The position numbers and the translations under genes are program-made. DNA of 64,000 nucleotides from sequence record ON529852.1, one strand, 5' to 3'. Position 1 is the first letter of the stretch, and each line of letters starts with the position of its first letter. Positions 469 to 1,964 of this stretch are shown one piece after another. The notes beneath the pieces were generated by a model. It searched no databases, had not been told where the DNA came from, and saw only the letters and a program-made list of their open reading frames with translations.

Positions 469-985
469 CGTCGCTTCGGAAACGGAGCGGCCGGCAACCG
501 GGCCTCGGCCCTACTAGCCGGGCTTCCAAGGGTATGCAGCCTACGGGCTGATCCCACGGGAGTTGAGACCGGACGCCGGGGTGACCCGGTCCATCCGCCG
601 AGACATGGTATCTCAAGGCTGCCGCAGCCCAAGAGACCACCCCTCGGACCGCCCGAGGCCGTAAGGCTGGAGGTCAGGAGTCTCAGGAGATCGGTCAGCA
701 ATGATCCGGTCGACCCTAAGGCGTCGCGGACTTCGCACCCTCGGGTGCGGGAGCCAAGATGTAGAGATGCGGGTCTAGGCGTCACAGCTTCGACCTTCAG
801 GTATGAGCCCCTCCACGGCGACGTGAAGGAAGCGTCAGCCTCACCTTCTTCGGGGAAACCTGATGCCCTGGTGAACTCTCCTGCCCAGACTGTAACGGTC
901 GAAAGCAGGCGCGAAGTCGGACCAGAACCAGATTGTCGGGAAGGCCCGCCTCGTATCTTCGGATGCAGGCGGGCCTTTTGCGTTT
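469..985 (+). ncRNA. candidate large structured non-coding RNA (~515 nt), family not recognised
   Basis: Own promoter and terminator. Stems closed by GAAA, UACG, GUGA, GUAA, GCAA, CUCG, GCGA and UUCG loops, all in + orientation. No credible CDS. Confidence 0.75.
941..985 (+). terminator. intrinsic terminator of the candidate ncRNA
   Basis: ~16-bp stem 941-977 with C(UUCG)G loop, followed by TTGCGTTT. Confidence 0.8.
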
Positions 986-991
986 CAGCCT

Positions 992-1021
992 AAAGAAAAG
1001 GGCCGCCCCGAGAGGCGGCCC
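992..1021 (-). terminator. intrinsic terminator
   Basis: GGGCCGCC/GGCGGCCC stem plus TTTTCTTT on the minus strand, just after the 1029 stop. Confidence 0.85.
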
Positions 1022-1028
1022 TTGTGGT

Positions 1029-1964
1029 TCAGGTCGACACCGTGAACGTCACCTCGACGGGCGGCGAGGTTCGCGTGATGGTGGTCGCGGTCAGGGTGAC
1101 CGTGAAGTCGCCGCCGACGTAGCCGTGGCGGTAGAACGACAGGCGCTGGATGTTCTGATAGACGAAGCCATCCGTCGTGCCGTCGACAATGTCGATGCCC
1201 TCGGCCGGATTCTCCAGGTGGACCTTACCGGCGGCGTCGGTGCGCAGCGTCAGCACCAGGTCGTTTTCCGGAGCCTTGGCGGTCACGGTCAGCGTGATCG
1301 CATAGAGTTCCGTCAACTTTTTGCCCGAGACCTTGTTGGTCAAGCCGAAGCTGAACGGGATGATCCAGTCGCGCCCGGCGGCGTTCGGCAGGGCGTATAC
1401 GCCCTCGACCGGCGTGACGACCGTCAGATCGTTCGGGTAGCGGGCGGCTCCGGCCAGTTCGATCTCGCCGTTCGAGGCGACCGTCATCCCGCCGATCGGA
1501 TTGCCGGAACCGTGGGTCAGGTAGCCTTCGGGCGACTGGAAGGCCGGCTCCGCGTCCGGCGTCACCTCAGGCTCGACAAGTTCAGCCGCCGCGACAACGG
1601 GGATCGCGTAGATTTCCGCGACCGTTTCCAAGCCGTTATGGGCGCGGACCGTGACGGACAGCGGGTCCAGGGCGGAGGTTTCGACCGCGCCCGCCACAAA
1701 GCGGGTCCCATCCAGGGCGATGCGCCCGCCGGCGTCGTCGATCAGGGTCAGGGTGGCTTCGGGGTCGGACAGGTAGACTTCGCCGACCGGCGCCCCCGCC
1801 TCGGATTCCGCCGCCAGCGTGCCGCCGCTGTAGAACAGGCGCAAGGGCAGCCGGCCCTGGCTTCCAGCGCCGCTCATGCGGCCCGAGATACGGCGCGGCG
1901 TGGGGTCGCCCGGAGAGGCTTTCGCCAGGGCCGAGAGATTGATACGGCGAGTACGCACAGCCAT
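1029..1964 (-). CDS. probable virion structural protein (beta-rich, N-terminal cadherin/Ig-like segment)
   Basis: 311 aa directly after the capsid genes; Thr/Val/Gly-rich beta-strand pattern. Function inferred from position. Confidence 0.55.
   Translation of the reverse strand: MAVRTRRINLSALAKASPGDPTPRRISGRMSGAGSQGRLPLRLFYSGGTLAAESEAGAPVGEVYLSDPEATLTLIDDAGGRIALDGTRFVAGAVETSALDPLSVTVRAHNGLETVAEIYAIPVVAAAELVEPEVTPDAEPAFQSPEGYLTHGSGNPIGGMTVASNGEIELAGAARYPNDLTVVTPVEGVYALPNAAGRDWIIPFSFGLTNKVSGKKLTELYAITLTVTAKAPENDLVLTLRTDAAGKVHLENPAEGIDIVDGTTDGFVYQNIQRLSFYRHGYVGGDFTVTLTATTITRTSPPVEVTFTVST

Follow-up and report, generated by a model that had tools for sequence, protein, structure and literature searches.

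Large, intricately folded RNAs of bacteria and phages are rare, and RNase P RNA, introns, OLE, GOLLD, and ROOL each opened new RNA biology, the latest of it being RNA-only nanocages. ROOL is a homo-oligomeric nanocage held together by kissing loops and A-minor contacts. Both ROOL (RF03087) and GOLLD (RF01998) are large ornate RNAs of phages and prophages, and both form RNA-only nanocages (PMC12286853). GOLLD is often found beside transfer RNA (tRNA) genes, and its members are commonly longer than 800 nt (PMC12286853). The subject of this report is a candidate non-coding RNA (ncRNA) of about 515 nt, encoded on the plus strand at positions 466-985 (predicted start to terminator U-tract) of a 64,000-nt stretch of DNA. 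This stretch, the window, begins at base 292,286 of record ON529852.1, the 356,285-bp genome of Brevundimonas phage vB_BpoS-Kabachok (Dolichocephalovirinae). Kabachok is a giant siphovirus that infects Brevundimonas pondensis and has an extremely elongated head of about 53 x 370 nm (PMC10070969). An initial annotation of the window had proposed a stand-alone structured RNA at this place, possibly of a new class. The region from about 466 to 985 is very probably a genuine structured ncRNA gene: it is conserved in seven phages, lacks a conserved reading frame, is bracketed by its own promoter and terminator motifs, and has a conserved secondary structure on one strand.

Conservation, strand-specific structure, and covariation

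A sensitive blastn search that took the RNA of Kabachok and that of Kikimora as queries against 50,697 phage genomes found the region in only seven giant phages of B. pondensis. Three clades can be told apart among these phages: Kabachok, Papperlapapp, and Domovoi (97-100% identity); Marchewka and Bambus (~84% identity); and Kikimora and Gurke, which can be aligned in blocks only (patchy ~80% identity). The element sits in a corresponding gap of 690-750 bp, flanked by the same genes, in all seven phages, which have in common about 147 invariant columns, the promoter boxes, and the terminator. Motif scans of IMG/VR yielded no match or chance matches in coding DNA, a metagenome motif scan yielded 18 loci that were all due to chance, and a motif scan of 185,579 bacterial genomes yielded 65 loci, all within unrelated coding DNA. 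Relatives sought via the 208-amino-acid (aa) neighbor protein were not found, and the RNA was absent, as judged by covariance model and motifs, from 10 loci retrieved via the major capsid protein and from the syntenic regions of CcrColossus, CcrPW, CcrSC, and CcrSwift. A 20-bit covariance-model match in CcrPW was rejected, as it lies inside a coding gene and on the opposite strand. In the available data, the RNA family is confined to the seven isolates. Separately, the BLAST query L006:1400-2043 has a second matching place elsewhere in the Kikimora (L006) and Gurke (L007) genomes.

The structural signal of the element is confined to the plus strand. The minimum free energy (MFE) of the full element has a z score of -3.56 on the plus strand versus -0.51 on the minus strand; without the terminator, representatives of the three clades have z scores of -2.60, -2.35, and -3.49 on the plus strand and +0.15, -0.68, and -1.13 on the minus strand. 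There are 10 hairpins with a GNRA or UNCG loop (stem of 3 bp or more) on the plus strand and 0 on the minus strand, against a background mean of 1.5 (standard deviation 1.3) per 523-nt window, and 0 of 1270 such windows reach 10. This strand asymmetry had been noticed in the initial annotation, and the loops listed there (GAAA at 479, UACG at 542, GUGA at 581, GUAA at 661, GCAA at 698, GCGA at 818, and UUCG at 958) each cap a stem of 4 bp or more. Beyond that list, an invariant GAAA tetraloop is also present at 855-858. The CUCG loop at 740-743, which had also been counted as canonical, does cap a stem, but it is neither a UNCG nor a GNRA loop. When the segments between sequence anchors are folded separately for each clade, the same helices appear in the same order despite their differing sequences. 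In an alignment-free tree-edit test with dinucleotide shuffles, the summed distance between Kabachok and Kikimora is 201, versus 292 +/- 23 for shuffled Kikimora (z = -3.9; 0 of 300 shuffles as low), with shared sequence anchors contributing part of the similarity.

Base-pair covariation points in the same direction. In a sequence-only alignment (A2) of the five phages of the two closer clades, 96.9% of cells are paired, and 10 pairs are changed on both sides. Sliding the 3' partners by 1-3 columns lowers this number to 0-2, and 14 of 500 shuffles have at least 10 doubly changed pairs. MAFFT alone misplaces several Kikimora and Gurke stems, so the table spanning all three clades was curated helix by helix by hand. 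This table has 112 pair columns (59 invariant, 34 compensatory, 2 compensatory with a mismatch, 8 changed on one side, and 9 with a mismatch), and 712 of its 732 cells are canonical. The 90 G-U cells argue for a plus-sense RNA because, read from the opposite strand, they would turn into C-A. Of the 21 helix segments, 19 contain compensatory pairs, the exceptions being the invariant P2/P2a and P9c. A covariance model trained on two clades also finds the third (27.9 bits for Kikimora, E ~3e-4), a result that bears on the four-way-junction domain. These observations agree with the proposal of a stand-alone structured RNA whose homologs keep their base pairs.

The same observations bear on the idea that the locus works in cis as DNA, for instance as a packaging site or a recombination hot spot, with hairpins acting as DNA. 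Such an element could be expected in a head-gene block with variable neighboring gene content, which is where the locus sits. However, the strand asymmetry of fold and tetraloops and the G-U cells favor a single-stranded plus-sense RNA, and a promoter and a terminator bracket the element exactly; a DNA element is thus extremely improbable.

Several points weigh against a structured RNA or against parts of the proposed fold. The covariance-model scores of Kikimora and Gurke (19.6 bits for the latter) are comparable to that of the reverse strand of the training loci (~21 bits), and the RNAalifold covariance term is just modestly better on the plus strand (-5.9 versus -3.4 on the minus strand). 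The phages represent three effective lineages, and each covarying pair reflects one or two events, too few for R-scape-type significance. The hand-aligned three-clade table was fitted to the structure and thus leans toward it; its covariation is supportive and not statistically decisive. The helix that would close the RNA is mutually exclusive with P2 (492-497 could pair with 517-520), and the fold is tentative in the region of about 765-840, in P13, and for the partners of the invariant unpaired segments. The paper describing the phages reports no ncRNA (PMC10070969).

Promoter, terminator, coding potential, and family searches

The promoter (434-462) and the strong terminator (941-985) described in the initial annotation are both present on the plus strand. 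The promoter is of the RpoD (sigma-70) type and consists of a -35 box, TTGACGG (434-440), a 14-nt spacer, and a -10 box, GCTACATC (455-462). Its sequence agrees at 15 of 15 specified positions with the Caulobacter RpoD consensus, TTGaCgS / GCtANAWC (PMC8144410). The pattern TTGAC-N15-19-GCTANA has no other match in the 64-kb window (expected 0.14) or in 114 kb of genome, and both boxes are kept in each of the three phage clades. The RNA polymerase of the host, carrying its principal sigma factor, would start the RNA at this promoter, at about 466-470 as placed by promoter spacing only. The intrinsic terminator has a 16-bp stem (stem-loop 941-977) and a UUCG loop, followed by the U-tract UUUUGCGUUU. 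It folds with -32.3 kcal/mol (z = -5.3), is kept in all seven phages, and would end transcription of the RNA; a consensus terminator scanner overlooked it because the stem has one internal mismatch. From these motifs we infer both transcription and its ends. At the level of motifs, the locus has the makeup of an independent ncRNA gene, with its own promoter and intrinsic terminator flanking a conserved non-coding region.

The promoter is closely preceded by three 9-mers that resemble DnaA boxes (381-419): TGTGGATTA and TGTGGATAT on the minus strand and the perfect TGTGGATAA on the plus strand at 411-419. Together, they form an imperfect inverted repeat centered about 50-70 nt upstream of the predicted start, and they are three of only five sites with at most one mismatch in 114 kb. 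In this upstream control region, TCTGTGGATAA is unchanged in all seven phages. We read the region 381-419 as a putative site of protein binding, by DnaA or by a factor of the phage, with control over the RNA promoter; it could tie expression of the RNA to host DnaA, or it could be the operator of a phage regulator. Next to the -35 box is the palindrome TCAGGATTCCTGA (421-433), and Kikimora and Gurke carry another palindrome, ACGATGTGTCGT, at this place, a swap that looks as if an operator had covaried with its regulator.

DnaA-box-like sites directly upstream of a strong promoter, one of them perfect and all kept in the seven phages, would also be expected of a replication origin or primer-RNA unit, in which DnaA would bind 381-419 and the transcript would prime or activate DNA synthesis as ColE1 RNA II does. 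A gene for RNase H, no more than about 10 kb from the locus, would suit this arrangement. Yet, cumulative GC skew climbs smoothly across the locus with no inflection (114 of 356 kb), and there is no strand switch, as the genes on both sides run in the same direction for at least 50 kb. Iterons and an AT-rich unwinding element are absent (the GC minimum is 0.49, at 101-200), the terminator of -32 kcal/mol ends the transcript, and the covariation of the helices is what a folded RNA product should show. Within the 114 kb considered, an origin is not supported, and we rate it as very unlikely.

No credible open reading frame (ORF) had been seen in the region by the initial annotation. An ORF does exist: a 212-aa coding sequence with an ATG start covers 355-993 on the plus strand and is annotated in GenBank as a hypothetical protein in Kabachok (KABACHOK_04620) and Domovoi (DOMOVOI_05190), although it is left unannotated in five of the seven genomes. 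This ORF is not credible and was judged spurious, because its frame is not kept in the other two clades. The plus strand can be read without a stop for at most 202-215 codons in the Kabachok clade, for 83 codons in Marchewka and Bambus, and for 137 codons, in another frame, in Kikimora and Gurke. The 93 substitutions between Kabachok and Marchewka are distributed as 37, 25, and 31 over codon positions 1, 2, and 3, with no codon periodicity, and the two sequences also differ by three single-base, frameshifting indels. The 212-aa product has no Pfam or PHROG match; its ORF would start ahead of the promoter and run over part of the ORF before it, and long spurious ORFs are frequent at 65% GC. Across the seven phages, the homologs conserve base pairs and not a reading frame. 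A protein-coding gene is hence about as improbable as a DNA element, and the two GenBank records contain a mis-annotated coding sequence, which is corrected here.

The RNA matches no known family in the searches made. Rfam 15 gave no match in the 64 kb at gathering thresholds and terminator-like noise only at E<=10 in 350-1050, and it gave no match to the RNA element in the Marchewka and Kikimora loci. The covariance models of GOLLD and ROOL are likewise without a match in the 64 kb, in 350-1050, and in the Marchewka and Kikimora loci. The view of the initial annotation that the RNA is not a transfer-messenger RNA (tmRNA), RNase P RNA, or an intron is borne out: ARAGORN found no tRNA or tmRNA gene in the window, and the RNase P P4/CR-I motif (GGAAAGUCCGG / GGAAAGUCC) is absent from the RNA sequence. 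Group I and group II intron models have no Rfam match, and the RNA interrupts no gene, splitting no ORF and having its own promoter and terminator. Small-ribozyme models have no match even at E<=10. Most likely, the RNA represents a new family of large structured phage RNA that belongs to none of the known families.

Predicted architecture

All structural elements are given for the plus strand. The first hairpin, P1 (470-491), has 9 bp and a GAAA loop, and it is followed by the 5' strand of a predicted 6-bp closing helix (CGGCAA/UUGUCG; 492-497 with 933-938) that would join the 5' and 3' ends of the RNA. The segment 492-497 is the only complement of the 3' hexamer at a homologous position in all seven phages, and forcing the closing helix costs 0.4, 0.0, and 2.1 kcal/mol over the MFE in the three clades. 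A comparison of the Kabachok and Kikimora clades shows four substitutions in the otherwise invariant 5' block (470-511) and one in the likewise otherwise invariant 19-nt 3' block (922-940); the next base (941) differs too. Two of the four 5' changes are the partners of the outermost P1 pair (G-C in Kabachok, A-U in Kikimora and Gurke), and a third is the N of the P1 GNRA loop (GUAA in Kikimora and Gurke). The fourth (A to G, 496) faces the sole 3' change (U to C, 934) in the closing helix, where an A-U pair becomes G-C in Kikimora and Gurke. The terminal blocks thus contain two compensatory pairs (8-29 and 34-472).

Inside the closing helix would lie P3, a four-way-junction domain (P4-P7), and the hairpins or subdomains P8-P13. 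The P2 region (500-522) consists of the P2a hairpin (500-511) and the invariant CUAGCCGGG (514-522); since it does not vary, covariation speaks neither for nor against P2. P3 (522-563) is a long irregular hairpin with a UACG, CUG, or UUCG tip and eight compensatory pair columns across clades. In the four-way-junction domain (564-685), P4 (564-569 with 680-685) encloses P5 (575-590), an invariant GUGA hairpin; P6 (598-647), with an invariant CUGCCGCAG tip; and P7 (648-674), with a GUAA loop. This topology is predicted independently in Kabachok and Kikimora, and compensatory pairs occur in P4, P5a, P6a-c, and P7. P8 (689-711) has a GCAA, GCGA, or GCAA loop, depending on the clade, and four compensatory pair columns.

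The segment 715-762 contains CCUAAG (715-720) and then P9 (721-762), a long hairpin with a CUCG tip. The base of P9 is CCUAAG in Kabachok and Marchewka and CCUACA...UAUGG in Kikimora, which looks similar to the 11-nt GAAA receptor, and it may be a GAAA-receptor-like element. The variable region (771-827) spans P10 (771-796), with a GUCACA loop (UUCG in Marchewka and Bambus) and three compensatory pair columns at its tip, and P11 (812-827), with a GCGA or GUGA loop and two compensatory pair columns. P12 (841-874) has an outer stem and an inner hairpin with the invariant GAAA loop already mentioned, and it includes four compensatory pair columns. P13 (880-909) has an inner hairpin with a conserved GUAA and is the weakest region in Kikimora. 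The invariant and apparently unpaired CCAGAACCAGA (922-932) is then followed by UUGUCG (933-938), which would form the 3' side of the closing helix.

Six or seven GNRA loops remain GNRA across clades while their stems change, and the invariant, apparently unpaired segments are CUAGCCGGG, UAGAGA, CUCUCC, and CCAGAACCAGA. The perfectly complementary GACUUCGC (729-736) and GCGAAGUC (911-918), which are partly kept in Kikimora (GACUUG / UAGGUC), possibly pair as an alternative to distal P9, in a pseudoknot or switch, as an unsupported candidate pairing. An AGAG/CUCU helix closing P10-P12 is a second unsupported candidate. Other pairings were dropped: that of the promoter -10 region (446-458) with CUAGCCGGG, which would be located ahead of the start and shows uncompensated variation; a pairing of the 5' leader with GAUU and a UCGUC/GGCGA helix specific to Kikimora, neither of which is conserved; and a CCCGGC/GUCGGG pairing predicted in Kikimora, which is impossible in Kabachok.

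Genomic setting, probable role, and comparison with known RNAs

The RNA locus lies inside the head-gene block of Kabachok. Upstream, the minus strand encodes a phrog_10854 protein and a phrog_240 head protein, and downstream, it encodes a 311-aa protein, a minor capsid protein (phrog_427), and the major capsid protein; the locus is thus beside the capsid module, as first described. The minus strand carries every gene across the 50 kb upstream of the locus, and the RNA element and a 56-aa ORF (213-383) form a small plus-strand island. The 56-aa ORF occurs in the Kabachok clade only and has no family match. Directly before it is a near-perfect 17-nt inverted repeat (171-187 / 188-204; region 163-204). 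The gene for the 311-aa neighbor (1029-1964, minus strand), which has no Pfam or PHROG match, is missing from Domovoi, has a 143-aa gene in its place in Marchewka and Bambus, and is present in the distant Kikimora and Gurke. Its comings and goings mark an accessory-gene hot spot within the head module. The convergent terminator of this gene (998-1023, minus strand) is separate from the RNA.

Further features of the surroundings include GAATCCTGCTCAAAGTCAAGATTTCC (91-119), upstream of the divergent minus-strand gene, which is kept in all clades, occurs as a single copy in the window, and is probably the promoter or leader of that gene. The phage has 24 tRNA genes, located in arrays 18-27 kb upstream of the RNA (L042 22836-32110; 265-274 kb of the record) and interspersed with small ORFs, a peptide deformylase gene, and a PhoH-like gene. 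Matches to BjrC68, an alphaproteobacterial small RNA, fall below the Rfam gathering score of 39 (L004 2689-2773, minus strand, 30.3 bits; L006 3024-3085, minus strand, 24 bits). They sit in the intergenic gap that precedes the start of the minor-capsid gene and follows the major capsid gene, and most likely they are a terminator-type hairpin.

Taken as a whole, the best explanation of the locus is a stand-alone ncRNA gene of about 515 nt acting via its three-dimensional fold, a reading that we consider probable, with slightly less assurance than the existence of the gene itself. The RNA would act in trans through a compact fold, as a scaffold, a decoy, or a self-associating particle, and neither by coding for a protein nor as an antisense RNA to a neighbor; antisense action is excluded because the RNA overlaps no gene. 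Both this mode of action and tertiary docking are matters that we infer, and the scaffold, decoy, or self-assembly mode in particular is a tentative suggestion, less likely than not. Because its neighbors (the 311-aa gene and the 56-aa ORF) vary between close relatives, the RNA probably has a dispensable "moron"-type function in manipulating the host, from a variable accessory slot of the head-gene block.

Two more specific roles are live sub-alternatives within the trans-acting folded RNA. As an anti-defense or host-takeover decoy or sponge, which overlaps the best explanation, the RNA would sequester a host protein or RNA early in infection. A host-type rather than a phage late promoter, an accessory slot in which genes come and go between close relatives, and a distribution limited to phages of one host are all consistent with this role, but no defense-related gene or target has been identified, and the 65 bacterial-genome matches of the conserved unpaired 19-mer all lie in unrelated coding DNA; we regard it as unlikely, although the likeliest of the specific alternatives. 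As a ribozyme, the RNA would process itself or act on phage or host RNAs, such as the 24 tRNA precursors. Large ribozymes typically have such a size, a multi-junction architecture, a closed 5'-3' helix, and invariant unpaired segments, all of which the RNA resembles. A loose likeness of the 3' block to the CR-V/P4 3' strand of RNase P RNA is a further lead. However, RNase P, intron, and small-ribozyme models have no match at E<=10, and no substrate gene or exon context is present, the tRNA arrays being 18-27 kb away; a ribozyme is appreciably less likely than a decoy.

The most far-reaching possibility is a new RNA-only machine (a homo-oligomer or a phi29 pRNA-like head cofactor) or a new ribozyme class; in each case, expression would depend on host DnaA status by way of the conserved DnaA-box cluster. 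We judge this rather improbable. The idea of a head-associated cofactor comes from the position in the head-gene block of very-long-headed phages and from nothing else. If the ncRNA gene is genuine, the RNA would be a further, unrelated large ornate RNA, and it would come from lytic giant phages that can be cultivated on a non-pathogenic laboratory host, so that it is directly open to deletion, probing, and cryo-EM. Mutations can be designed from three diverged versions, and the host-type promoter with its DnaA boxes suggests a regulatory input that can be tested.

Compared with more distant systems, the RNA shares particular traits. Like phi29 pRNA, the product of a host-type early promoter with a link to head assembly, it is a structured phage RNA with a host-type promoter and a gene within a head-gene block (a positional link only); unlike phi29 pRNA (~174 nt), it has no model match and no tie to portal or terminase. 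It resembles type A RNase P RNA in its size class, in ends closed by a terminal helix, and in multiple GNRA loops, and the 3' block CAGAACC...UU.UCGG loosely resembles the CR-V/P4 3' strand, a likeness that is only a lead and that no model match backs. In contrast to RNase P RNA, it has no model match at E<=10 and lacks the CR-I motif. With ColE1 RNA II it would share a structured transcript of about 0.5 kb, a strong promoter, and adjacent DnaA-box-like sites, whereas it differs from ColE1 RNA II and DnaA-box origins in its strong terminator and in having no skew inflection, strand switch, or unwinding element.

The closest systems are ROOL and GOLLD. Like them, the RNA is encoded by a phage, measures several hundred nucleotides (close to the length of ROOL), is non-coding, and is the product of a stand-alone gene, with a multi-junction fold rich in GNRA-type loops. 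It differs in having no sequence or structure match to either model, at gathering thresholds or at E<=10, in agreement with the initial suggestion of a possible new class. Its length of about 515 nt and the absence of a tRNA gene from the window, with the nearest tRNA array about 18 kb away, set it apart from GOLLD, and whereas ROOL and GOLLD are widespread in prophages and metagenomes, it forms a tiny family in the giant lytic phages of one host. The favored view is that the RNA is of the same general kind as ROOL and GOLLD and a member of neither family.

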